From the sequence record MZ574431.2: 64,000 bases of DNA; one strand, 5' to 3'. Positions 3,131 through 39,677 of the stretch are shown here, piece by piece (positions within the stretch are counted from its first letter, which is position 1; each line of letters begins with the position of its first letter). Under the pieces are notes generated by a model. It was not told the origin of the DNA. It ran no database searches and worked only from the letters and a program-made list of their open reading frames with translations. The translations under genes were made by a program, and so were the position numbers.

Positions 3131-3441
3131 CGCGGCTGACGCAGGCGCAGCGCCGCATCGTCTCCCAGGCCCTGGATCATCCGCTGAACCTCGCTGAGCC
3201 CCACCATTCGTGGAATGGGCTACGCCGCGCCAATTGGCATACGACGATGAGCCGGCTCGTCGCCGAGGACGTGTTCAGGCCCTACGCCCACGGCGGCTAC
3301 GAACTGACCGAAAAGGGCAAGGCTTTCGGTCGTCCGCCGATCATCCCGGTGGATCAGGCGCAGGTCGAGCGCACGGGTAAGGCCATTCAAAAATCCTTGG
3401 CCGAACCCTTCGTCATCCCGAGAAAGTCCTATCTGCGGTGA
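3127..3441 (+). CDS. hypothetical protein, possible winged helix
   Basis: GTGA overlap; GGYELTEKG wing-like motif. Confidence 0.7.
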   Translation: MTRLTQAQRRIVSQALDHPLNLAEPHHSWNGLRRANWHTTMSRLVAEDVFRPYAHGGYELTEKGKAFGRPPIIPVDQAQVERTGKAIQKSLAEPFVIPRKSYLR

Positions 3442-29598: not shown

Positions 29599-30791
29599 CC
29601 GAGCCCAAGAAGAGAGGCCGCCGCGCCGGCGAGAGCAACAAGACCCGCTACATCAACGGCGTGGCCTTCGAGACCCGCGAGTTCGTCAACAAGCTGATCG
29701 AGACCATCAACGCCCTGCGCGATCTGCCTGTCCCCACCGTCCAGGGCATCGTCGACCTGTGGGCCGATCCCTACTGGACCAGCACCGAGGGCGACCTTGA
29801 TCTGCGCCGCTGCCTGCATCGCATGCACCAGCAGGGCAACCTGATCCGCGAGACGCGCGGCGTCTACCGGGTGTCGGACGTCCTGCACCTGCGCGCCTCC
29901 CATGATCTGCAACTGATCGCCGAGCGCACCTTGCGCGACCTGGGGGGGTTCGCCTCGGCCAAGACCCTGCGTAGGGCCATGGGCTATTCGGCCGAGGAAG
30001 CCGTCAACGCCAACCTCTGGCACGCCCTGCGCCTGGAAGGCTCGCGCATCCGCCGCGACTTCCGCGAGCGCTACCTTTACAACCTCCCCGCCGAGGACCT
30101 GCGCAACCTCGTCCTGGCCGGCAAGTGGGCGCTGCCCTACTATCGCGGGGTCTATCTGGGCATGGCCAGCGCCGAACCGGGCGAGCGTCCCTGGCGCGCG
30201 CTCGTTGATCTGCACATCACCGCCGTCGGGTCGGCCTTCCAGACCGCGCGGCTGATCTGCGGCCTGGAGATCGAGGACCTGATCGCCCTCAAGCCGAACC
30301 GCGTCGACGGCGAGAGCCCCCACGTCTATCCCGATCTGGTCAAGGCCATCGACGCGGCGCGCTACGCCAATCCAGCCCGGCGATCGGTCAGCGAGTATCG
30401 CCGCGAGATCAAGAACAAGGTCGTCGTCGGACAGCGCGAGAACCGCAATGGCCGCCTCGTCGACGAGGTCGCCGAAATCCCGATCGAGGATCACGAGGAA
30501 AAAGCCGTCTTCGCCGACGACCTGCGCCGCGCCTTCCTGCGCTCTATCGAGAGCCCCGGCGCCGATCCTGATCCGCGCTATCTCGACGACAGCGACTATC
30601 GCTTCCTGCCGGCCGAGTTCTTCACCGCCGCCGCCGCGATCTTCAAATGCGATCCCGTCGACCTGTCCTGGGGACGGGTGGGGCCGCGCGCCGACCTCGG
30701 CTGGCATACACGACGCGACAGCCGCAACCACGCTCAGCCCGAGTTCGAGGATGAAGACCTCACCGAAGAGGGCGATCGCCAGGAGACCTGA
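29595..30791 (+). CDS. multi-winged-helix protein (possible replication initiator or regulator)
   Basis: DLRRCLHRMHQQGNLIRETRGVYRV and second wHTH-like unit; abuts AT-rich repeat region. Confidence 0.6.
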   Translation: MTEPKKRGRRAGESNKTRYINGVAFETREFVNKLIETINALRDLPVPTVQGIVDLWADPYWTSTEGDLDLRRCLHRMHQQGNLIRETRGVYRVSDVLHLRASHDLQLIAERTLRDLGGFASAKTLRRAMGYSAEEAVNANLWHALRLEGSRIRRDFRERYLYNLPAEDLRNLVLAGKWALPYYRGVYLGMASAEPGERPWRALVDLHITAVGSAFQTARLICGLEIEDLIALKPNRVDGESPHVYPDLVKAIDAARYANPARRSVSEYRREIKNKVVVGQRENRNGRLVDEVAEIPIEDHEEKAVFADDLRRAFLRSIESPGADPDPRYLDDSDYRFLPAEFFTAAAAIFKCDPVDLSWGRVGPRADLGWHTRRDSRNHAQPEFEDEDLTEEGDRQET

Positions 30792-30931
30792 AACCCTTGG
30801 CGTGCTTGGCCCGAAGGGCCTTTTAGGGGCTGCCCGGTCATGAAAAATAGACAGGTAAGACTCTTGGTGTACTGAAAGACAACAAAAAGACTAGACCTGA
30901 ACAGGGGGTGGGCGGTGCAGACACGGCCTGC

Positions 30932-31130
30932 CCCTATAAGCTTATACACATACATGGTGTATTAAACGACAAGGGAACGACATACTCAGGAGCGGCGGAA
31001 AAGGTCCCTTCCCTATAAGCTTATACACATACATGGTGTATTAAACGACATATAAAAGGTATGAGCCACAGGCTCTCACAGACATGCCGCCCTTATAAGC
31101 TACACCACATACATGGTGTATTAAATGACA
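30932..31130. repeat. 3 x 40-bp direct repeat with 39/40-bp unique spacers (CRISPR-like or iteron array)
   Basis: CCCTATAAGCTTATACACATACATGGTGTATTAAACGACA at 30932 and 31011; variant at 31091. Confidence 0.85.
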
Positions 31131-31189
31131 TGTTAAAGGCATCACTCCCCCACTCCACACAGGAGACAGGGCGAAGCTTTCTCACAACC

Positions 31190-31446
31190 ACACTCCCTAT
31201 CATTCTTTTTATTTATTATTAAATACACCAATTTATCCCTCTTATAGAATAGGAAAAGAAGGAATCTTCTACTTTGGTGTAAAAAGAGTAGAGACAACCT
31301 TTGAGAGAGTGATCCCCAGCCTGCATGGTCCAGACGAAGAGACGATGAGAGGACGGCGAAGGGAGGGCGACACGATTTGCGACACCTCCCGGTAGGACGA
31401 CACCGAGGGGACGATCCTGACCAGCCGACGTCACGACACCCGACAC
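31190..31446. other. AT-rich tract plus CGACAC x5; candidate replication origin
   Basis: A/T-rich 31200-31290 in a GC-rich genome; TGGTGTA in both orientations; CGACAC at 31368, 31380, 31398, 31434, 31441. Confidence 0.45.
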
Positions 31447-31733
31447 CGCGATGATGAGTGCGCGACCGGCGAACGGAGGGCGCAGCCCGAGTGAGGTGGG
31501 AGGCGTAGCTGACCTGGACTCCTGGTGATCGAACCGTCCTGGCTCCAGCCGCTCGATGCCGAGGTCTTCGAGGATTCTGGGGAAACTGATCCCGACCGGC
31601 GACGAGGGCGAAGCCCGAGGCGGTGGGATGGGGCGTCGATCATGACCCATGTCGTGTTTGTTGACATGTGTCACGTGACGTGGCATGAAGGATTCAAGAT
31701 GGTTAACGGACACCATCTTCAGGACCTCCCGAA

Positions 31734-32462
31734 ATGTTCACGCCCATCCGCGCCGCCAGCCTCGACGACCCCCGCCCCCAACTGGGCGATGGGGCTGTTC
31801 TGACCGCCGCCGTCAAGCTGGTGCTGCCCAGCTTCGTCGAGTGGACCAAGGCGCGCGGTCTGGACCTGACCGACGAGCAGATCACCTTCGCGGTGGAACT
31901 CGCGCTCAAGCAGTCCAAGACCGCCGGCGCGGATTGGGCCTGGACTTCGGCCAAGGTCCTGGAGACCGCCTTTGGCCTGCCCGGCGATGGCAAGCTGATC
32001 GCCCGCCTCGAAGCGGTGATCGCCAACCAGAAGCTGGCCTGGGAGCGCGAGACGCGCGCCTGGGTCCTGCGCACCGGCTATCGCATCCCGGCCGACGAGC
32101 AGGAGAAGGTCGAGGCCCTGGTCGAGGGCGTGCCCGTCGTTGGCAAGATCGTCGGCGTCTCGCGCGGCCTGGGCGTGGCCTATCTCCAGACCGAGGACGG
32201 GACCCAGACCTTCCGCATCGACGGCGAGGACATCATCGCCAACCACACCCAGGGCCGCTTTGCCCCCGAGACCCCGATCCTGGGCTCGCGCTATGAGGAT
32301 GCGCCGGCCCTGGCGCTGGCCGCCGAGGCGCAGCGTCGCAAGAAGCCGGCCGGCAAGTTCGCCCAGCCGGCGAGCGATGCACGCACCCGCCAGCAACAGA
32401 TCGCCGACGCCTACAAGGCCGGCACGTTCGGCGCGGACGCCGATGGTCCTGGAGTCGCCTGA
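31734..32462 (+). CDS. hypothetical phage protein
   Basis: 242 aa, GC3-rich codons. Confidence 0.85.
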   Translation: MFTPIRAASLDDPRPQLGDGAVLTAAVKLVLPSFVEWTKARGLDLTDEQITFAVELALKQSKTAGADWAWTSAKVLETAFGLPGDGKLIARLEAVIANQKLAWERETRAWVLRTGYRIPADEQEKVEALVEGVPVVGKIVGVSRGLGVAYLQTEDGTQTFRIDGEDIIANHTQGRFAPETPILGSRYEDAPALALAAEAQRRKKPAGKFAQPASDARTRQQQIADAYKAGTFGADADGPGVA

Positions 32463-32572
32463 TGTTGACCAGCATCCCCATTTTCGTCGGCGGCCTCGTG
32501 CTGGTGATCGTCCTGCTCACCGCCCTGATCCGTGTCGCCGACGACCGTTACGACCGGAGCAGCTTCAAGTGA
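32462..32572 (+). CDS. micro membrane protein 1 (36 aa)
   Basis: TGATG overlap; MLTSIPIFVGGLVLVIVLLTALIRV. Confidence 0.7.
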   Translation: MLTSIPIFVGGLVLVIVLLTALIRVADDRYDRSSFK

Positions 32573-32712
32573 GCCTCTTTCTGACCATCCTCGCCATCCT
32601 GACGCTCATCGTCGTGTTGGTGATCGCCGCCTTCTACTTCGGCGTCTTCGTCCTGCTCTACGCCCTGGCTGGCATGTTCGAGACCAACGGCTCCAAGTGG
32701 GGCAAGGCATGA
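32569..32712 (+). CDS. micro membrane protein 2 (47 aa)
   Basis: GTGA overlap; long hydrophobic run. Confidence 0.75.
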   Translation: MSLFLTILAILTLIVVLVIAAFYFGVFVLLYALAGMFETNGSKWGKA

Positions 32713-32852
32713 CCCTGCTGCTCACCGCCATCATGGTCCTGGGACCCTATCTGGTCATGTTCGGCATGCTGGGCGTGGCCGCCCTCGCCGTCTGGATGTG
32801 GTCGGGCCTGATCGCCAAGGCCCTCGCCGGCCAGACCAAGGACGACCAATGA
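32709..32852 (+). CDS. micro membrane protein 3 (47 aa)
   Basis: ATGA overlap; hydrophobic. Confidence 0.75.
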   Translation: MTLLLTAIMVLGPYLVMFGMLGVAALAVWMWSGLIAKALAGQTKDDQ

Positions 32853-33130
32853 CCTTCGCCCTCACCCTCCTGGGCTGGCTGCTCAAGTCGATCCTGGTCC
32901 TGCTGATCACGGTCGCTGCCGGCACGATCCTGGTCGTGGTCCTCTATTTCGGCCTGATCCTGCTGGGCGTGATGACGGGCGTCGTCCTCATCGCCGCCGA
33001 GATGCGCAAGGAGGCCGCGCGCGTCGACCACAAGGTCAGCGTCTCGACGGCCGGCGACCTGCGCCTGGAAGAAGCGGTCATCCCGCTCAGCCGCACCCGG
33101 TCGGTCAAGATCGAGCGCGCCACGGCCTGA
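32849..33130 (+). CDS. small membrane protein 4 (93 aa)
   Basis: ATGA overlap; two TM helices. Confidence 0.75.
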   Translation: MTFALTLLGWLLKSILVLLITVAAGTILVVVLYFGLILLGVMTGVVLIAAEMRKEAARVDHKVSVSTAGDLRLEEAVIPLSRTRSVKIERATA

Positions 33131-33132
33131 CC

Positions 33133-33216
33133 TTGAACGACCTCCTCACCCTGGGGCTGGTGGCGATCCTCGCCTTCGCCCTGTTCTTCAACTCCGACCC
33201 GGACAACACACGATGA
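33133..33216 (+). CDS. micro membrane protein 5 (27 aa)
   Basis: TTG start; LLTLGLVAILAFALFF. Confidence 0.55.
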   Translation: MNDLLTLGLVAILAFALFFNSDPDNTR

Positions 33217-33365
33217 GCATGCTGCTGCAAGTGACCCTGGTGCTGGTCGGCGTCGCCCTGGTGGCGGGCCTTGCCTGGGCCATGGAGCACGTCGAGGACG
33301 CCATCCACCAGACGATCGACTATTCGGACCGCTTCACCGAGAAGACCGCCGAGGCCCCCGAATGA
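33213..33365 (+). CDS. micro membrane protein 6 (50 aa)
   Basis: ATGA overlap; one TM then acidic tail. Confidence 0.7.
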   Translation: MSMLLQVTLVLVGVALVAGLAWAMEHVEDAIHQTIDYSDRFTEKTAEAPE

Positions 33366-33448
33366 TCGAGATTGTCTTTGCCGCCGCCGTCGCCCTGGTC
33401 CTGGTCATCGCCATCTTCCGGGTGGTCGACCACTACGACGGCCAATAG
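33362..33448 (+). CDS. micro membrane protein 7 (28 aa)
   Basis: ATGA overlap; IVFAAAVALVLVIAIF. Confidence 0.65.
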   Translation: MIEIVFAAAVALVLVIAIFRVVDHYDGQ

Positions 33449-33450
33449 CC

Positions 33451-33624
33451 ATGGCGCTGCTCGTCCTGCTGCTGACCCTCGCCGCCTTCGTCTTCGGCGC
33501 CAGCGTCTCGGAGAAAATCTACGACGTGGGCGAGGCCGATGACGGCGATCTCTGGCGCGCGGGCGTCATGACCCTGATCTTCGCCGCCGCCCTGATCGCC
33601 ATCGCCTTTCGCGAGCACCTCTGA
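33451..33624 (+). CDS. micro membrane protein 8 (57 aa)
   Basis: two TM helices. Confidence 0.7.
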   Translation: MALLVLLLTLAAFVFGASVSEKIYDVGEADDGDLWRAGVMTLIFAAALIAIAFREHL

Positions 33625-33695
33625 TGTCCCTGCTGCTGATCGGCGCCTTCATCGTCTGGCTGGCCTACGCCACCGCCCGAAATCTACGCGTGTAG
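33624..33695 (+). CDS. micro membrane protein 9 (23 aa)
   Basis: TGATG overlap; LLLIGAFIVWLAYA. Confidence 0.55.
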   Translation: MSLLLIGAFIVWLAYATARNLRV

Positions 33696-33696
33696 C

Positions 33697-33783
33697 ATGA
33701 TCTGGACCATCCTCGGCTGGGCCTTTGGCGTGGGCTTCGTCGTGCTGCTGTTTGCCTCCTCCAATTCGAAGACCTGCTCATGA
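33697..33783 (+). CDS. micro membrane protein 10 (28 aa)
   Basis: IWTILGWAFGVGFVVLLFA. Confidence 0.6.
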   Translation: MIWTILGWAFGVGFVVLLFASSNSKTCS

Positions 33784-33944
33784 CCTTCATCGCCTTCGCC
33801 CTGGCCGTCAGCTTCGGCGCCGCCTGCGCCGACTTCAAGCGCTATGCCGACGACGACAATGGCGGCGGCGCTCTGTACGCGGCCGGGGTTGGCGTCATCC
33901 AACTGATCGCCATCGGGATGCTGTTCCAAAAGGTCGCGGGATGA
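33780..33944 (+). CDS. micro membrane protein 11 (54 aa)
   Basis: ATGA overlap; two hydrophobic segments. Confidence 0.65.
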   Translation: MTFIAFALAVSFGAACADFKRYADDDNGGGALYAAGVGVIQLIAIGMLFQKVAG

Positions 33945-34111
33945 TCGCCGCCGCTGGCGCGGTAGGGGCGCTCGCCGCCCAGCGCATCCGTGAGCGCGGC
34001 GACCCGCCGCTCGCGCCGATGACCCGCGCCGAGATGATGATCCTGCTGACCGAGGCGGGCGTGATGGTCCTGGCCGTGGCGATCGTCATCGCCGTCTGCT
34101 TGGCGGCCTGA
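33941..34111 (+). CDS. micro membrane protein 12 (56 aa)
   Basis: ATGA overlap; C-terminal TM. Confidence 0.7.
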   Translation: MIAAAGAVGALAAQRIRERGDPPLAPMTRAEMMILLTEAGVMVLAVAIVIAVCLAA

Positions 34112-34113
34112 CC

Positions 34114-34632
34114 ATGCGAATTCTCGGGGTCGACCCCGGCACCAAGGGCGCGCTGGCCATCCTCGACACCGTCAAGTGGACGGTGGCCATCATCGACATG
34201 CCCCTGGAGATCGGCACCAAGGGCAAGGAGAAGGTCTCGGCCCAGGGCGTGCTCGAAGTCGTCCGCGCCGCCGCCCCCGACGCGGCCTTCCTCGAAGAGG
34301 TCCATGCCAGCCCGCAAATGGGCGTGACCTCGGCCTTCTCGTTCGGCGACGGCTATGGCTGCACCCGCACGGCGATCCTGGCCTATGGCTGCGCGCTGTG
34401 GCCGATCCGCCCCCAGGTCTGGAAGCCGGCCATGAAGGCGCCCAAGGACAAAAAGCAGGCCACCACCCGCGCCAGCCAACTGGTCCCCGCCGCCCACAGC
34501 ATCCTCTTTGGTCCGCGCGGCGGCGCCTATGACGGACGGGCCGAGGCCCTGTTGCTCAGCCTCTATGGCTGTTTCCACCTCAAGGACGTGCCCAAGAAGG
34601 CCCTCACCCTCGTGCCGTTCCCGACCCTCTAA
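34114..34632 (+). CDS. ruvC: RuvC-like Holliday junction resolvase
   Basis: MRILGVDPG, FLEEV, SAFSFG..YG, DGRAEALL. Confidence 0.85.
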   Translation: MRILGVDPGTKGALAILDTVKWTVAIIDMPLEIGTKGKEKVSAQGVLEVVRAAAPDAAFLEEVHASPQMGVTSAFSFGDGYGCTRTAILAYGCALWPIRPQVWKPAMKAPKDKKQATTRASQLVPAAHSILFGPRGGAYDGRAEALLLSLYGCFHLKDVPKKALTLVPFPTL

Positions 34633-34654
34633 GCTTACCCGAGTAGCACCCAGT

Positions 34655-35209
34655 ATGACCGGCTATACCGTCCAGCCCTACCAGTACCGGCCCAAGAAGG
34701 CCCGCCTGCGCGACAACACCGCCCTGGCTCTGCTGGACCTGCGTCCGCGCCGGCCCGCCCCCACCGTCGCCGCCTACCAACCGCGCAAGAAGCGCGCCCG
34801 CCTGACCGGGCCATACCTACCGCTCGATGCGCTGAAGGCGGGCCATACCCGGCCATACCAGCCCACCAGCCGTCCCCAACCGGCCACCCGCGCGGGCGTC
34901 CACCCCGTCTACGACGAGTGCTTCGCCACCGCCGATCACGTCTATGAGGAGCCGCGCGGCCCCGAGATCGTGCCGATCGGCATCCTTGACGAGCGCGGGG
35001 TCATGCTCTGCCGCGTGACCATGCCGATCAAGCAGCAGATGGGCATCAACACCGGCGGGAACGCCTGGACCGGCGATTTCGACGAGGAGGTCGAGGCGCT
35101 CGTCCCGGCCGACATGCTGCGCATCTCCACTGGCGGCGGCGGGGTCAGCGAGATCGACGCCTCGGAGTTCGACGAGGATTTCGACGATGAGGACGAGGAC
35201 CTCTTCTAG
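34655..35209 (+). CDS. hypothetical protein, basic N-terminal repeats and acidic tail
   Basis: YQYRPKKARL / YQPRKKRARL; ends EFDEDFDDEDEDLF. Confidence 0.75.
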   Translation: MTGYTVQPYQYRPKKARLRDNTALALLDLRPRRPAPTVAAYQPRKKRARLTGPYLPLDALKAGHTRPYQPTSRPQPATRAGVHPVYDECFATADHVYEEPRGPEIVPIGILDERGVMLCRVTMPIKQQMGINTGGNAWTGDFDEEVEALVPADMLRISTGGGGVSEIDASEFDEDFDDEDEDLF

Positions 35210-35212
35210 GCC

Positions 35213-35425
35213 ATGAACATCGACTTCACCCCCATCTTCGTCATGGCCTTCATCGGCCTTGTCGCCTGCGGCGCGGGCGCCGGCGCGCTCCTGGCCCTGC
35301 TGATCGCCTTGCCGGCCATGCTCTGGAGCCACAGTTTCGTCGCCGCCGGCGACTACGCCCTGATCGGCGCGGGCGCCGGCGTGGCCCTCACCAGCCTGTG
35401 GGTCTATCGGGGGATGCGCCCATGA
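35213..35425 (+). CDS. small membrane protein
   Basis: 70 aa, hydrophobic. Confidence 0.75.
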   Translation: MNIDFTPIFVMAFIGLVACGAGAGALLALLIALPAMLWSHSFVAAGDYALIGAGAGVALTSLWVYRGMRP

Positions 35426-35748
35426 CCCGCGCCATCGAAGCCGAAATCGTCAAGCTCCTGGCCGAGATCAAGGACGCCGAGGCCCGTCAGTCGGCCCAGA
35501 CCGATTTCTGGGCGGAAAAGCAGCGCGCCTATCTCGACGCCTGCGAGACCACCGGCGATCCCAAGGTCTTGTCGGCCGCCCAGATCGCCGCCCAGGTGGC
35601 CTATGACCTGACCCTCGACGCGGTCGCCTTCAAGGGGGCCATGATCGTCAAGCTCAAGGACCTCAAGGCCCAGCGCCAGGACGCCATCGCCAAGAAGACC
35701 GCCGCCCGCAAGGGCCGGCAGGGCGATGATGGACGCGAGGCTGCCTGA
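35422..35748 (+). CDS. coiled-coil hypothetical protein
   Basis: ATGA overlap, coupled to TerS. Confidence 0.8.
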   Translation: MTRAIEAEIVKLLAEIKDAEARQSAQTDFWAEKQRAYLDACETTGDPKVLSAAQIAAQVAYDLTLDAVAFKGAMIVKLKDLKAQRQDAIAKKTAARKGRQGDDGREAA

Positions 35749-36460
35749 TGCCGGTTCTCGCCAACGCCCGCCAGGAGCTTTACGCCAAGCACCGCGCCAA
35801 CGGTTTTGTCGCCAAGAAGGCCGCCCAGGCCGCCGGCTACGCCACCGGCTCGGCCATCTATCAGGGGCTGGAGGAAGACCCCGAGATCATCGCCCGCATC
35901 CAGGAACTGATGGATGAGCGCGCCGAGGCCAAGGCCGCGCGCATGGCCGCCGCCCAGGCCAAGGCCCTGGCCGAAGGTCACACCGTCGGCACCATCACCG
36001 GCGTCTCCCATGCCTGGGTCATCGAGCAGTTGAAGATGAACGCCGAGGACGCCCGCGAGGCCGGCGACTTCAAGGAAAGCAACGCCTCCTTGAAGCTGAT
36101 CGGCGAGGCCATGGGCATGTGGAGCGGCGCGGGCAATGACGGCGGGCCGGGCGGCAGCTTCAATCCGCAAGGCGGCAATGACGCCATGCAACTGATCGAC
36201 CTGGACGCCATCGGCCAGCTTGTCCAGGTCACCGACCAGTTCCACGCCAAGCTCGAAGGCCCACCGAAGTCAGCGTCGACGAGCGCGACACCGCCATGAT
36301 GCTGATCGCCGGCCAAGGGACCAAGAACCTTGCGCCCCAGCGCGAGATGTCCACCGGCAGCGAGACCGACGCCGCCCTCCAGATGCTCGACGCTCTGGAC
36401 GAGGACCTGATCGAACTGGCCCGCGAGGTTCCCCCGCCGGCCCCTGAAATTCTCGACTAA
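35748..36460 (+). CDS. terS: terminase small subunit (apparent frameshift near 36260)
   Basis: N-terminal RQELYAK...AAQAAGY HTH typical of TerS; upstream of TerL; GC3-rich -1 frame continues to TAA at 36458-60. Confidence 0.65.
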
Positions 36461-36477
36461 GGACAAGACCTAAGACC

Positions 36478-36633
36478 ATGACTCAAGCCGCTCCCCGCAC
36501 CACCTTCAAGGCCTTTTTGCTGAATGGCACCGCCATCCACAACCAGACCGCCCTGATGCACGAGGTGCGCATCCCCAGCGCCTATGGCCCGATGCGCGCG
36601 TGGCAACTGATCGCCGATCGGTACGACCAGTGA
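36478..36633 (+). CDS. 51-aa hypothetical protein
   Basis: GC3-rich codons, GTGA overlap with next gene. Confidence 0.6.
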   Translation: MTQAAPRTTFKAFLLNGTAIHNQTALMHEVRIPSAYGPMRAWQLIADRYDQ

Positions 36634-36770
36634 GGCCCTCGACGCTCGCCCTGGGGCTGGCCGCCGTGGTGGCGGCCCTGGCCCTGCGCCTGACCGCCCC
36701 GGTCAGCGCCCGCACCAAGCTCATGTCGCTGGCCACCAGACCCCCGTGGGTCGGCCGCAAGCTTCCCTGA
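36630..36770 (+). CDS. 46-aa membrane peptide
   Basis: LALGLAAVVAALAL. Confidence 0.5.
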   Translation: MRPSTLALGLAAVVAALALRLTAPVSARTKLMSLATRPPWVGRKLP

Positions 36771-36851
36771 AAACCTCAAGAGCCCGCCCGATCAACGAGG
36801 CGGGCCTTGCCATATCGATGACGAGCCGCCCACCAACCTGGACGACTCAAA

Positions 36852-39677
36852 GTGACCTCCGCTTCTGCTCTTGGCCTGGATTTCTCCAAGCCGCCGATTT
36901 CTCCCTATCCGCACGAGGAGCGCTCCAAGCGCCGTGAGGGTGTGCGCCGCATGCGCAAGCTCTCCGAGGACGTGCGCTATTTCGTCGATCGCGGCCTGGA
37001 GCCGGACCCGACCATCGCCCAGGTCGCCAACGCCATCACCGGCGTGGCCGATCCGCGCATGCAGGTCAATCTGCTCGATCAGATCGCCGACAAAATCCAG
37101 CACGAGCACCTGGAGAAGCTCTCGGCCCTGGCCAAGAACGATTTCTCGGCCTTCTGCGAGGTGATCAGCCCCGAGGAGCCGCCCGAGAGCCCCTGGCACA
37201 TCTGGCTGACCAACTTCCTGCAAGAGGTCGAGATGAGCCCCGACCTCAACAAGGTCGTGCTCAACGTGCCGCCCGGCCACGCCAAGCCCCTGGCCGACAC
37301 CACCCCGGTGCTGATGGGCGACGGCGCCTACAAGCTCTTGCGCGACATCAAGGTCGGCGATCAGGTCTGGACCCACGCCCAGCGCGCGCGCCCGGTGACG
37401 GCGATCCACGACCAGGGCAAGCTCGCCACCGTCTGGGTCGAGACCACCGCCGGCCGCCGCGTCCAGGCCGCGCTCGACCACCCGTTCCTGGTCAAGCTCG
37501 GCGAGCGCGAGGATGGCAGCCCCATCGCCGAGTGGATCAACGCCGGCGACCTGCGTCCGGGCATGGACCTCGTCGTGGCCGCCCACACCCCGCCCCGCCT
37601 TGTCCATCACCGCTATGACGGCGACCACACCGACTACGACGCCTTCCTGCACCGCGCCCGCATGCTCGGCTACATGGCCATCGGCGGGGCGCTGCACTGG
37701 CAGAAGTCCAAGACCCAGGTCACCCCGTCGCCGGACTTCCGCCTGTCGACCCACAAGCGGCCCTTGATGAAGGCCATCCTGGCCCTGGTCAAGAAGGACC
37801 TTGGCCACCACATGAGCGTCTGCAAGGTCTCCTCGCAGAACACCTTCGTCGCGCGCCTGGGCGTCAAGGCCTTTCGCGATCTCAACGCCGGCGACTGGTT
37901 CACCTACGAGCCCGAAAAGCGCCGCGCCCCGCCGGCCATCTTCACCGCCTCCAAGGAAGAGATCGCCGCCTTCGTCGGCGCGGCCTTCACCCTGCGCGGC
38001 GAGGTCATCCGCCGCCTGAAGGGCAAGAACCTGCGCCTCTACCATCGCTCGCAAGACCTGCTGAGCGACATCCAGAAGCTGTGCGCCTCGCTAGGGGCGT
38101 TTTCCAGCCTCGACAGGGGCGATCCCGACTTTGGCGGCCGACCCTGCTTGAACCTCGATTTCGGGGCTGTGGAGGCCCTCCAGGCGGCTGGAGTGACCTT
38201 CGATGCGGAGACCGACGCCGACCTCGCCGCTCAGCCGCCCAAGGTCCTAGGGGCTGCCTTCGATCCGGGCCTGGACGCGGTGGTCTCGGTCATGCCCGGC
38301 AAGAAGGCTGCGTGCCTGTGCCTGACGGTCGAGGAGGACCACAGCTTCACCGCCGAGACCCTGGTGGTCAAGAACTCCACCTACGCCTCGCGCCTGTTCG
38401 TGGCGTGGCGCCTGGGGCGCGATCCCAACCAGCGCATCATCGGCGGCGGCCACAGCCAGAACTTCGTCGAAAACGAGTTCTCCTCGAAAATCCGCGACAT
38501 CGTCGAGAGCCCCGAATACCAGAAGGTGTTCCCGGCCGTGGTCATCGACCACAAGACCAACGCCAAGCAGCAATGGAAGCTGGCCGGCTACAAGGGCCAG
38601 TATGTCGCGCGGGGCGTGGGCCAGGGCATCCACGGTTTCCGCGCCACCTTCATCTGCGTCGATGACCCCTACTCCAAGATCGAGGACGCCAACAGCCCCG
38701 TTCACCGCCGCAAGGTCGAGCAGTGGTTCGACGCCGACATCGGCTCTCGCGCCCTGCCCGGCTGCAAGACTTTCCTGATCATGACCCGCTTCCATGGTGA
38801 AGACCTCACCAATCACCTGGAAGAGATGAACAAGGTCTTGCCGGCGGATGCACAGTGGAAGATCGTCACTGTACCTGCGATTTGTTTTGACGAAGACACC
38901 GATTTGCTAGGCCGCAAGGTCGGTGAACTTTTGTGGGATTACTATCCCTTGAGCTACTTCGTTGATAAGAAAGTACAATTTGGATTTCTGGGTTTCGCCC
39001 TCACCTACCAACAAGTCTCTTCGGCGGCCAATCCCGACAATATCGCCAGCAAGTTCAATTTCTACGATTATTTGCCTCACGAGTCGCCTGAGGCCCTGGC
39101 CCGCGCCCCCAAGGATCAGTTCGGAAGGCCCCAGCCGGACCTGTCGGATTTTTACCGGCGCACGATCGTCTCGGTCGACACCGCCGCCAAGACCACCGAA
39201 CGGGCCGACTACACCGTGGTCCAGGTCTGGCGCGAGGATTTCAAGGGCAACCACTATCTGGTCCACCAGGACCGCCGGAAGGTGGAATTCAACGACCTGA
39301 TCGCCATGATCGAGGGGCCGGCGCTGAAGTACCGGGCCGATCAAATCCTCGTCGAGGACAAGGGCTCAGGCACCCAGTACCTGCAAAATCGCGGCGCCAC
39401 CGACAGCCAGAAGCGTCAGGCCCCCGCCCCGCTGGTGGCGGTCAATCCAGGCGTGGCCGGCAAGGAGTTCCGCTTCGACGGCGTCACCCCGATGATCACC
39501 GCCGGCGAGGTCTGGCTGCCCAAGAACGCGCCCTGGATCGAGCAGCTTCTGGTCGAGGTGGGCCAGTTCCCCGACAGCGCCCACGATGACCAAGTCGACG
39601 CCCTGTCGCAGTACCTCAACCACGCCAAGAAGAACCGCACCCGCTACGGCAGCCGCAAGATCACCAAGCATACCTGA
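36852..39677 (+). CDS. terL: terminase large subunit, intein-containing
   Basis: Walker A PPGHAK|ST split by intein; ICVDDP Walker B; IMTRFH; nuclease VSVDTA...HDDQVDALSQ. Confidence 0.95.
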   Translation: MTSASALGLDFSKPPISPYPHEERSKRREGVRRMRKLSEDVRYFVDRGLEPDPTIAQVANAITGVADPRMQVNLLDQIADKIQHEHLEKLSALAKNDFSAFCEVISPEEPPESPWHIWLTNFLQEVEMSPDLNKVVLNVPPGHAKPLADTTPVLMGDGAYKLLRDIKVGDQVWTHAQRARPVTAIHDQGKLATVWVETTAGRRVQAALDHPFLVKLGEREDGSPIAEWINAGDLRPGMDLVVAAHTPPRLVHHRYDGDHTDYDAFLHRARMLGYMAIGGALHWQKSKTQVTPSPDFRLSTHKRPLMKAILALVKKDLGHHMSVCKVSSQNTFVARLGVKAFRDLNAGDWFTYEPEKRRAPPAIFTASKEEIAAFVGAAFTLRGEVIRRLKGKNLRLYHRSQDLLSDIQKLCASLGAFSSLDRGDPDFGGRPCLNLDFGAVEALQAAGVTFDAETDADLAAQPPKVLGAAFDPGLDAVVSVMPGKKAACLCLTVEEDHSFTAETLVVKNSTYASRLFVAWRLGRDPNQRIIGGGHSQNFVENEFSSKIRDIVESPEYQKVFPAVVIDHKTNAKQQWKLAGYKGQYVARGVGQGIHGFRATFICVDDPYSKIEDANSPVHRRKVEQWFDADIGSRALPGCKTFLIMTRFHGEDLTNHLEEMNKVLPADAQWKIVTVPAICFDEDTDLLGRKVGELLWDYYPLSYFVDKKVQFGFLGFALTYQQVSSAANPDNIASKFNFYDYLPHESPEALARAPKDQFGRPQPDLSDFYRRTIVSVDTAAKTTERADYTVVQVWREDFKGNHYLVHQDRRKVEFNDLIAMIEGPALKYRADQILVEDKGSGTQYLQNRGATDSQKRQAPAPLVAVNPGVAGKEFRFDGVTPMITAGEVWLPKNAPWIEQLLVEVGQFPDSAHDDQVDALSQYLNHAKKNRTRYGSRKITKHT
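37287..38375 (+). mobile_element. 363-aa intein with degenerate LAGLIDADG domain in TerL Walker A
   Basis: starts PLADTTPVLMGDG, block B AALDHPF, block F CLTVEEDHSF, ends VVKN/S. Confidence 0.9.

Follow-up and report, generated by a model that had tools for sequence, protein, structure and literature searches.

The host-takeover module of Bacillus phage SPO1, gp37 to gp60, consists of small, tightly packed genes, one of which encodes gp56, a membrane protein that blocks division. It is an early module located in the terminal redundancy, it is equipped with strong promoters and ribosome-binding sites, and most of its products are soluble. Phage T4 encodes Imm and Sp, small inner-membrane proteins of superinfection exclusion, and genes of this type typically diversify fast. 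In Caulobacter, the single-pass inner-membrane peptides SidA (29 amino acids, aa) and DidA (71 aa) halt division via FtsW and FtsN (PMC4211646). Here we compare these systems with an array of twelve open reading frames (ORFs) on the + strand at positions 32462-34111 of a 64,000-nucleotide (nt) stretch of DNA from Caulobacter phage J4 (MZ574431.2); the whole of this stretch is called the window below. Confidence is high that the majority of the twelve are genuine genes for membrane proteins. The explanation that best covers the locus as a whole is an accessory module, specific to the genus, in which twelve separate genes each encode a very small inner-membrane protein that would act as an independent binder through its transmembrane (TM) helix. 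This explanation is held to be rather probable, a grade that blends the high confidence in the genes with a confidence in the function that falls a little short of even.

J4 is a jumbo siphophage of 312 kb (65% GC) that belongs to the genus Bertelyvirus, subfamily Dolichocephalovirinae. The window is 100% identical to it over the 8 kb around the array, which occupies positions 280462-282111 of the J4 record (window position plus 248000). In order, the ORFs of the array encode 36, 47, 47, 93, 27, 50, 28, 57, 23, 28, 54, and 56 aa, and they tile the region with a coding share of ~99.6% of its 1650 nt. Thirteen junctions lead from the preceding gene, gp473, through the array to ruvC. Seven of these are 4-nt overlaps (GTGA or ATGA, at 32569, 32709, 32849, 33213, 33362, 33780, and 33941), two are 1-nt overlaps (TGATG, where the gp473 stop meets the ORF1 start and at 33624), and four are spacers of 1-2 nt (before the TTG start at 33133, before 33451 and 33697, and before the RuvC start at 34114). 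The ATGA overlap accounts for the frequent T, I, S, or N at residue 2 of the products, which is thus no family signal. An earlier reading made from the letters of the window (the sequence-only reading) had reported twelve ORFs of 23-93 aa within these 1.65 kb, with one or two hydrophobic helices each and with most of them joined by ATGA, GTGA, or TGATG overlaps. All twelve are present in the sequence at the starts that it gave, every one contains at least one strongly hydrophobic segment, and 9 of the 13 junctions overlap.

Base composition and codon usage both mark the twelve frames as coding. The GC content at the first, second, and third codon positions (GC1/GC2/GC3) is ~0.6/0.4/0.9 in each ORF, and GC3 ranges from 0.83 to 0.95. 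Within the 5' extensions of the longer open frames GC3 is 0.39-0.63, which is non-coding-like, and this drop fixes the starts where the sequence-only reading had placed them. Antisense ORFs have a GC3 of 0.65-0.82, a wrong-frame pattern. The codon adaptation index (CAI), computed against the synonymous codon choice in 102 long genes of the public J4 record, is 0.59-0.82 for the twelve ORFs; for the long genes themselves the median is 0.69 and the 5th percentile 0.58. Each ORF of the array scores above 97-99.9% of 1587 small ORFs drawn from wrong frames of real genes.

The products are uniformly hydrophobic. In all twelve, the maximum Kyte-Doolittle mean over 17 residues is 2.0-3.3. A rough segment map assigns a single pass to seven (ORF1, 2, 5, 6, 7, 9, and 10) and two helices or a long kinked hydrophobic stretch to ORF3, 4, 8, and 11, while ORF12 is tail-anchored. 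Such genes are not spread evenly along the chromosome. A density scan of the whole 312-kb genome of the public J4 record, in which GC3-supported ORFs of at most 110 aa with a hydrophobic segment were counted, found 44 small hydrophobic ORFs, 12 of them within one 2-kb interval; these are the ORFs of the array, which takes up 0.5% of the genome. The next densest interval is the adjacent one, with 3, and every other interval has at most 2. Of all 2-kb bins in the window, only that of the array has a clearly negative AT skew, which fits T-rich second codon positions.

The closest relatives of J4 by identity are C1, C2, and two records named 'Bertelyvirus sp.' (98.5%), followed by RB23 (96.9%) and BL47 (95.9%). 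CcrBL9 and CcrSC (BL9 and SC below) are ~82% identical to J4 over the alignable parts, and phiCbK, Colossus, and the Brevundimonas phages match the J4 stretch in terL only. Six annotated records were compared: J4, C1, RB23, BL47, BL9, and SC. In every one of these Bertelyviruses the same tiled array, with the same style of junction, stands between the gp473 homologue and ruvC. It comprises 12 ORFs in J4 and in C1, 11 in RB23 and in BL47, 16 in BL9, and 13 in SC, counts that include ORF9 orthologues added by hand. Orthology was scored by a shuffle-based alignment Z, and the proportions of nonsynonymous and synonymous differences (pN and pS) were derived from Nei-Gojobori counts, with Fisher p values.

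Pooled over the array, pN/pS is 0.45 for BL9 versus SC (511 codons, p=7e-10), 0.53 for J4 versus C1 (ORF1-4, p=0.005), and 0.47 for J4 versus RB23 (p=4e-4). In the same genome pairs, the flanking genes gp473, ruvC, gp483, and gp485 have values of 0.10-0.27. Together, these numbers indicate that selection on the array is purifying but relaxed, with protein change 2-4 times faster than in the neighbouring genes. The comparisons of J4 with BL9 and with SC are saturated (pS ~0.43, in GC3-restricted codons) and are uninformative for most members. ORF7 and ORF9 form the exception; taken together, they give a pN/pS of 0.35 (p=4e-4) and are the best-conserved and most constrained members of the array, although they encode just 28 and 23 aa. 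For ORF3, ORF5, ORF8, and ORF10, constraint on the single ORF is weak or without a measure. The sequence-only reading had proposed dN/dS and synteny in relatives as a check, and this came out in favour of the genes: frames and boundaries are kept in four lineages, and the pooled purifying selection is significant. By these alignments, the array is made up of a core under purifying selection (ORF1, 3, 6, 7, 9, and 11 and, by position, ORF5) and a variable shell (ORF2, the tail of ORF4, ORF8, ORF10, and ORF12, together with the extra genes of BL9 and SC).

The core begins with ORF1 (32462-32572; 36 aa, GenBank gp474), in which an N-terminal TM segment is followed by a C-terminal tail with the motif LIRVADDRYD. 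Its GC3 is 0.89 and its CAI 0.65; orthologues are present in all lineages (Z 9.5 in BL9/SC), and pN/pS versus C1 is 0.45. ORF3 (32709-32852; 47 aa, gp476 with a later start) is hydrophobic with an LGPY kink (GC3 0.92, CAI 0.80). Its match in BL9/SC is weak (Z 5-6.5), and the BL9 and SC proteins are 100% identical to each other at a pS of 0.19. ORF5 (33133-33216; 27 aa, unannotated in J4) has a TTG start and a single TM segment. It has a GC3 of 0.89 and a CAI of 0.59, which is surpassed by 3% of wrong-frame ORFs; its TTG start and frame are preserved in C1, RB23, and BL47, and at its position BL9 and SC have an ORF of 25 aa whose pN/pS between the two phages is 0.13. ORF6 (33213-33365; 50 aa, gp478) combines an N-terminal TM segment with an acidic tail (net charge -6); it has orthologues in all lineages (Z ~19) and a pN/pS of 0.35 for BL9 versus SC.

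The two most constrained genes follow shortly after. ORF7 (33362-33448; 28 aa), which is unannotated in J4, C1, BL9, and SC, encodes a single TM segment and the tail FRVVDHYDGQ. Across four lineages 20 of its 28 columns are invariant, with a Z of 20-30 in BL9/SC; versus RB23, pN is 0.017 and pS 0.33, and the pooled pN/pS is 0.33 (p=2e-5). ORF9 (33624-33695; 23 aa) encodes a single TM segment with the tail ARNLRV and is found in every Bertelyvirus lineage examined (Z 20 in BL9/SC). Among J4, RB23, BL9, and SC, 17 of its 23 columns are invariant, and 8 codon columns show synonymous change only, including switches between TCC and AGC for Ser and between CGC and AGG for Arg. None of the six records annotates it correctly: J4, C1, BL47, BL9, and SC have no annotation for it (in SC the start is GTG), and the frame annotated as gp483 in RB23 reads MVSSHERLDH... 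The conserved product of that RB23 region is the ORF9 orthologue MSVLIIGVFIVWLAYASARNLRV, which lies in another frame (L005 3224-3295 versus 3237-3308). The last core member, ORF11 (33780-33944; 54 aa, gp480), is a TM hairpin with an acidic loop (GC3 0.85, CAI 0.69). Its BL9 orthologue has a Z of 9.2, and an unrelated hairpin of 59 aa takes its place in RB23 and BL47.

Among the members of the shell, ORF2 (32569-32712; 47 aa, gp475) starts with GTG and has a hydrophobic stretch of ~37 residues. Its GC3 is 0.92, its CAI 0.68, and its pN/pS versus C1 0.59; a weak orthologue is present in BL9 (Z 6.9) and none in SC. ORF4 (32849-33130; 93 aa, gp477) is the longest, with two TM segments and a polar C-terminal tail of 50 aa (GC3 0.95, CAI 0.80, pN/pS 0.22 versus C1). 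In RB23 and BL47 it has a form of 86 aa in which the C-terminal tail is replaced. ORF8 (33451-33624; 57 aa, gp479) is a TM hairpin with an acidic loop, has a GC3 of 0.91 and a CAI of 0.76, and occurs in J4 and C1 only; it is cleanly absent from RB23/BL47, through an insertion/deletion (indel) of 173 nt, and from BL9/SC. ORF10 (33697-33783; 28 aa, unannotated in J4) has a single TM segment, a GC3 of 0.83, and a CAI of 0.59. It is limited to J4, C1, RB23, and BL47 and is absent from BL9 and SC; the RB23/BL47 orthologue is 63% identical, with a pN/pS of 0.51. ORF12 (33941-34111; 56 aa, gp481) has an N-terminal part of 40 aa with the motif AAAGAVGALAAQR, followed by a C-terminal TM segment. Its SC orthologue is 58-61% identical (Z 19, pN/pS 0.64), and it is missing from BL9. 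Conversely, BL9 and SC hold five or six members that J4 lacks.

Much of the array is already on deposit as hypothetical genes, since J4 gp474-481, RB23 gp476-486, and BL9 gp498-508 are the same genes. The statement of the sequence-only reading that the array is mostly invisible to the ORF track therefore fails for the public annotation. GenBank lists 8 of the 12 in J4, missing ORF5, ORF7, ORF9, and ORF10 and starting ORF3 late, and the RB23 annotation covers nearly all, but with the wrong frame over ORF9. The BL9, SC, and C1 annotations omit the orthologues of ORF7 and ORF9. Relative to the deposited records, the new elements are four J4 ORFs without annotation, ORF9 as a universal gene of 23 aa, the all-membrane make-up, the restriction to the genus, and the turnover. 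No published description of the array was found in the literature searched.

Turnover sets the array apart from its surroundings. Between close relatives the divergence is concentrated within it; the flanks show either full identity or no indels. From ORF5 to a point past terL, J4 and C1 have the same sequence, but in the stretch that runs from the 3' half of gp473 to the end of ORF4 every 250 nt contain 9-35 differences. J4 and RB23, in turn, are identical up to the middle of ORF4 and then differ massively through ORF11, including the 173-nt indel that removes ORF8. BL9 and SC are separated by eight indel blocks within the array and by none in the flanking genes. The changes affect whole genes or preserve the frame, and they include gains, losses, a replacement, and a fusion among close relatives. 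These alignments mark the array as a hotspot, both for whole-gene indels and for recombination between co-circulating phages.

The fusion is a 52-aa gene of SC (L003 3114-3272), which by comparison with BL9 (L002 3562-3923) appears to have arisen by an in-frame deletion. It joins the first ~46 codons of a 56-aa hairpin gene of BL9 to the last five codons (YKAPA) of the 63-aa gene that follows. Possible internal paralogy was also seen: the motif R-V-x-D-x-Y-D is common to the tails of ORF1 and ORF7, and the helix of ORF12 is similar to the second one of ORF8. These hints are at noise level (shuffle Z 5.5-8, with no alignment by BLASTP), so tandem duplication is not established.

The same genomic site is nearly empty in more distant phages. 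phiCbK has a single small soluble gene in the interval from the gp473 homologue to RuvC. In Colossus and PW that interval holds two genes, for a soluble protein of 98 aa and a tail-anchored protein of 56 aa, and in the uncultivated IMGVR_UViG_3300001199_000001 (279 kb, 56% GC) the gp473 homologue abuts ruvC with no gene between. The presence of 0-2 genes in these relatives indicates that the hydrophobic array is an expansion within Bertelyvirus. The RuvC of the uncultivated phage is 62% identical to that of J4, and this phage is intermediate between Bertelyvirus and Colossusvirus. ORF12 has the same length, position, and architecture as Colossus gp443 and PW gp445. An hhalign comparison of ORF12 with Colossus gp443 gave a probability of 59% (E 9e-5) over 16 N-terminal residues only, and BLASTP of this pair gave no match. 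From position, length, architecture, and the weak profile match, ORF12 is probably orthologous to Colossus gp443 and probably represents the ancestral occupant of the site.

Searches beyond these phages returned little. Scans of all 12 products against PHROGs and Pfam gave no match below E 0.01 and no membership in a holin, antiholin, or spanin family. In a word-indexed search of 5.8 billion proteins ORF6 found itself only, and ORF4 had noise-level neighbours only in the ESM Atlas. A profile of ORF7, run against one genome each of 185,579 prokaryote species, yielded 177 pattern matches, none of them confirmed, and a profile of ORF9 run against IMG/VR retrieved CcrBL9 and CcrSC only. Rfam and tRNA scans of the window were without a match. 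By the searches made, which found no relative of any member outside the genus, the array is restricted to Bertelyvirus.

The array appears to belong to a longer transcription unit that begins with gp473 (31734-32462, + strand), a gene for a soluble protein of 242 aa (phrog_11118) with homologues in phiCbK (gp312) and Colossus (gp441). Upstream of gp473, a promoter- or operator-like block (31640-31715, + strand) contains TTGACA at 31661 and, after it, the 10-nt palindrome GTCACGTGAC, which occurs once in the 64-kb window. This block of ~80 nt, with its TTGACA/G and perfect palindrome, is near-invariant in J4, CcrBL9, and CcrSC, and the intergenic region around it is poorly conserved. It is probably the promoter or operator of the unit from gp473 through the array and ruvC to terL. 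A scan of 30500-37000 for the sigma-70 consensus found no site, and no + strand terminator was found within the array. The intergenic region upstream of gp473 is 940 nt long and low in GC, and at 30930-31142 it has three 54-nt direct repeats at a spacing of 79-80 nt. GenBank gp472c (165 aa, 31219-31716, minus strand) spans this region with a non-coding-like GC1/2/3 of 0.61/0.50/0.60 and is probably a spurious coding-sequence call.

Downstream, 2 nt after ORF12, comes the gene for a RuvC-like Holliday junction resolvase (34114-34632, + strand; 172 aa, phrog_1770, E 2e-24), whose homologues are annotated as resolvase in many phages. The order after the array, all on the + strand with tight junctions, is RuvC, gp483, gp484, gp485, terS, three small ORFs, and terL. 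Of these, gp484 (35213-35425; 70 aa) encodes a multi-TM protein that lies outside the array but is of the same kind, and it is conserved in BL9/SC at 38-40% identity. The terminase subunits are encoded by terS (35748-36299; small subunit, phrog_11494, E 2e-41), which is shortened in J4 by a 1-nt indel, and by terL (36852-39677; large subunit), which bears an intein as in phiCbK-like phages; an intein is annotated in the TerL homologues of phiCbK and Colossus. The sequence-only reading had placed the array directly upstream of ruvC-terS-terL. RuvC does adjoin it, but terS, with three other genes in between, is at a distance of 1.6 kb, and terL at one of 2.7 kb. The further small TM ORFs that it listed downstream, at 35213 (70 aa), 36630 (46 aa), and 40835 (45 aa), are all present.

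Two features of the J4 record in this region should be mentioned. A 1-nt deletion in a C run at 36255-36265 (GGCCCC in C1, GGCCC in J4) splits the 237-aa TerS of C1, RB23, BL47, BL9, and SC into J4 gp486 (183 aa) and gp487 (54 aa; ORF 36296-36460), which reflects either a genuine frameshift or a sequencing error at the homopolymer. In addition, the GenBank record places the start of a direct terminal repeat of 24.7 kb within the last terL codons (window 39615, record 287615), as described for phiCbK.

A plausible path from gene to membrane can be outlined. The array would be transcribed together with gp473, ruvC, and the terminase genes from the element at ~31661. Few of its ORFs are preceded by a Shine-Dalgarno-like sequence, which makes termination-reinitiation the likely mode of translation; ribosomes would pass from one ORF to the next at the overlapping or abutting stop and start codons. 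The peptides would then insert into the host inner membrane, where each may use its TM helix to bind, independently of the others, a protein or complex of that membrane, and thereby alter division, envelope, receptor, or DNA-entry functions during infection. SPO1 gp56 and T4 Imm, like SidA acting on FtsW and DidA acting on FtsN, are known examples of this mode. The sequence-only reading had suggested inhibitors of pilus or flagellum, division, or transporters, or modulators of lysis or exclusion, as possible roles; in the searches made, no member had a homologue whose function is known. That the peptides are independent TM-helix binders of host inner-membrane machines, for exclusion or takeover, was chosen as the functional reading because SidA and DidA provide a precedent in the host itself; by this analogy it is about an even bet, leaning slightly to the negative. 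The phages share a host and a creek, and the fast turnover between them suggests that the selective force is inter-phage exclusion or adaptation to host variants; the combination of orphan status, all-hydrophobic composition, core/shell structure, and recombination is expected of accessory proteins that face the host envelope or rival phages.

Several points weigh against this view. Its functional part is drawn wholly from analogy, and no sequence similarity of any member to a characterised small membrane protein was found. Transcription, translation, and membrane insertion of the array are all predictions from the sequence, and the promoter was assigned by its conserved motif alone. Selection on the array is weak relative to the neighbouring genes; the saturated comparison of J4 with BL9 gives a pN/pS of 0.90, which is not significant, and ORF3 is without constraint between J4 and C1 (pN/pS 1.1). 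ORF5, with its TTG start, and ORF10 have the lowest codon-usage scores and are the two weakest calls. The copies of ORF8 in J4 and C1 are identical, and for this reason constraint on it has no comparative measure or support.

The proposal of independent helix binders can be extended into a broader scenario, which is unlikely in its entirety. In it, the gp473-ruvC junction would be a site of repeated birth or duplication, swapping, and fusion of micro-genes, at which 0-2 genes became 11-16 hydrophobic ORFs. The result would be a diversifying battery directed against co-circulating jumbo phages, in mutual exclusion, or against host envelope variation, with a fixed core, including the 23-aa and 28-aa peptides, that hits conserved inner-membrane targets such as the divisome or the pilus/flagellar portals of adsorption.

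Other explanations fare worse. One alternative is that the peptides are lysis-timing or membrane-permeabilising agents (holin, antiholin, pinholin-like, or type-I-toxin-like), expressed along with the packaging genes to adjust when lysis occurs. The small products, whose one or two TM helices bear charged tails like those of class II and III holins, would suit such a role, the unit shared with the terminase genes suggests late expression, and ORF6 has very weak PHROG matches to an Rz-like spanin and a 'membrane associated protein' (E 0.01-0.07). Those matches, however, are at noise level. The array is not the lysis cassette. The only stand-alone gene in J4 for a GH24 lysozyme (endolysin) is at 119330-119677 of the record, 161 kb from the array, which makes a canonical lysis role unlikely, and phiCbK-like phages have a recognisable endolysin-holin-spanin cassette after the tail genes (PMC3556154). 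Moreover, 12-16 genes are far above the need of any lysis system, and members are gained and lost between near-identical phages. We consider this explanation quite improbable.

A single hetero-oligomeric membrane complex, whose subunits are held in fixed proportions by translational coupling, is very unlikely. The tight stop-start overlaps would be in keeping with it, as would the constant order of the core (ORF1 ... ORF5-6-7 ... 9 ... 11) in all lineages. Such overlaps are usual between neighbouring genes throughout the J4 genome, however (4-nt and 1-nt overlaps join gp484/485, gp485/486, and gp488/489, for example), and by themselves are thus no argument for a fixed stoichiometry. There is also no constant set of subunits: the array has 11-16 members, BL9 and SC differ in membership, as do phages at 96-98% identity, and in one SC gene parts of two genes of BL9 are fused in frame. 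Such differences in gene content between 96-98% identical phages speak against an assembly of fixed stoichiometry. Co-folding of ORF6 with ORF7 and ORF9 gave a score of 0.13 against a mark of 0.34 and weighs neither way. The claim of the sequence-only reading that the coupling argues for real, stoichiometric expression consequently divides in two. The genes are real by composition, codon usage, frames kept in four lineages, and purifying selection, but the overlaps, being usual in J4, and the varying gene content do not bear out the stoichiometry.

It is scarcely credible that most of the ORFs are non-functional, being debris of a decayed multi-pass gene or chance frames in GC-rich, T-skewed DNA with few real genes among them (ORF6, 7, 9, and 12), for although high-GC DNA yields many long chance ORFs, and relaxed selection leaves ORF3 (J4 versus C1), ORF5, ORF8, and ORF10 with little individual support, every claimed start coincides exactly with a switch of frame in the GC3 and codon-usage signals, the ORFs keep their lengths and their start and stop positions across lineages, indels are whole-gene or in multiples of three, three independent comparisons each show significant purifying selection in the pooled data, Met, TM segment, and polar tail recur as a separate layout in each unit, and Pfam has no match to any transporter or polytopic family. 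A single decayed polytopic gene was rejected on the frame-exact coding signals, the kept boundaries, the purifying selection, the separate Met-TM-tail layouts, and the missing Pfam match.

Whatever the function, the locus is instructive in several respects. Phage genomes are rich in tiny genes that annotation pipelines overlook and that are unstudied, and here the public records of six Bertelyviruses lack, or put in the wrong frame, the two best-conserved genes of the locus, ORF7 and ORF9 (28 and 23 aa). The array also constitutes a set of 12-16 natural peptides for probing division, pili, flagella, and DNA entry in Caulobacter crescentus, a prime model of cell biology, and it is a clean case of local gene-number expansion with rapid exchange of modules at one genomic junction. 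If the peptides prove to be free of phenotype, the finding amounts to a correction of the annotation only.

Set beside the known systems, the array shares features with each and coincides with none. Like holins and antiholins, its products are small and phage-encoded and have one to three TM helices and a charged C-terminus, but the array is 161 kb from the endolysin gene and holds far too many copies. The fast diversification of genes such as those for Imm and Sp of T4 fits the mosaic pattern seen among phages of the same creek and the same host. There is no homology to these proteins, however, exclusion systems usually consist of one or two genes rather than 12-16, and to our knowledge no exclusion phenotype has been reported for Bertelyviruses. 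The SPO1 module is likewise a long run of small packed phage genes, some of them for membrane proteins that act on host envelope machinery; the J4 array differs in being entirely hydrophobic and in sharing a unit with ruvC and terminase. The likeness to SidA and DidA is one of form only, but it extends to host, size class, and layout, in that ORF1, 5, 6, 7, 9, and 10 are 23-50 aa long with one TM segment and short flanks. SidA and DidA are host-encoded, DNA-damage-induced products of single genes, and the phage ORFs form an array of 12. The two host proteins demonstrate that in Caulobacter a peptide need be no larger than ORF7, ORF9, or ORF10 to be a potent regulator.

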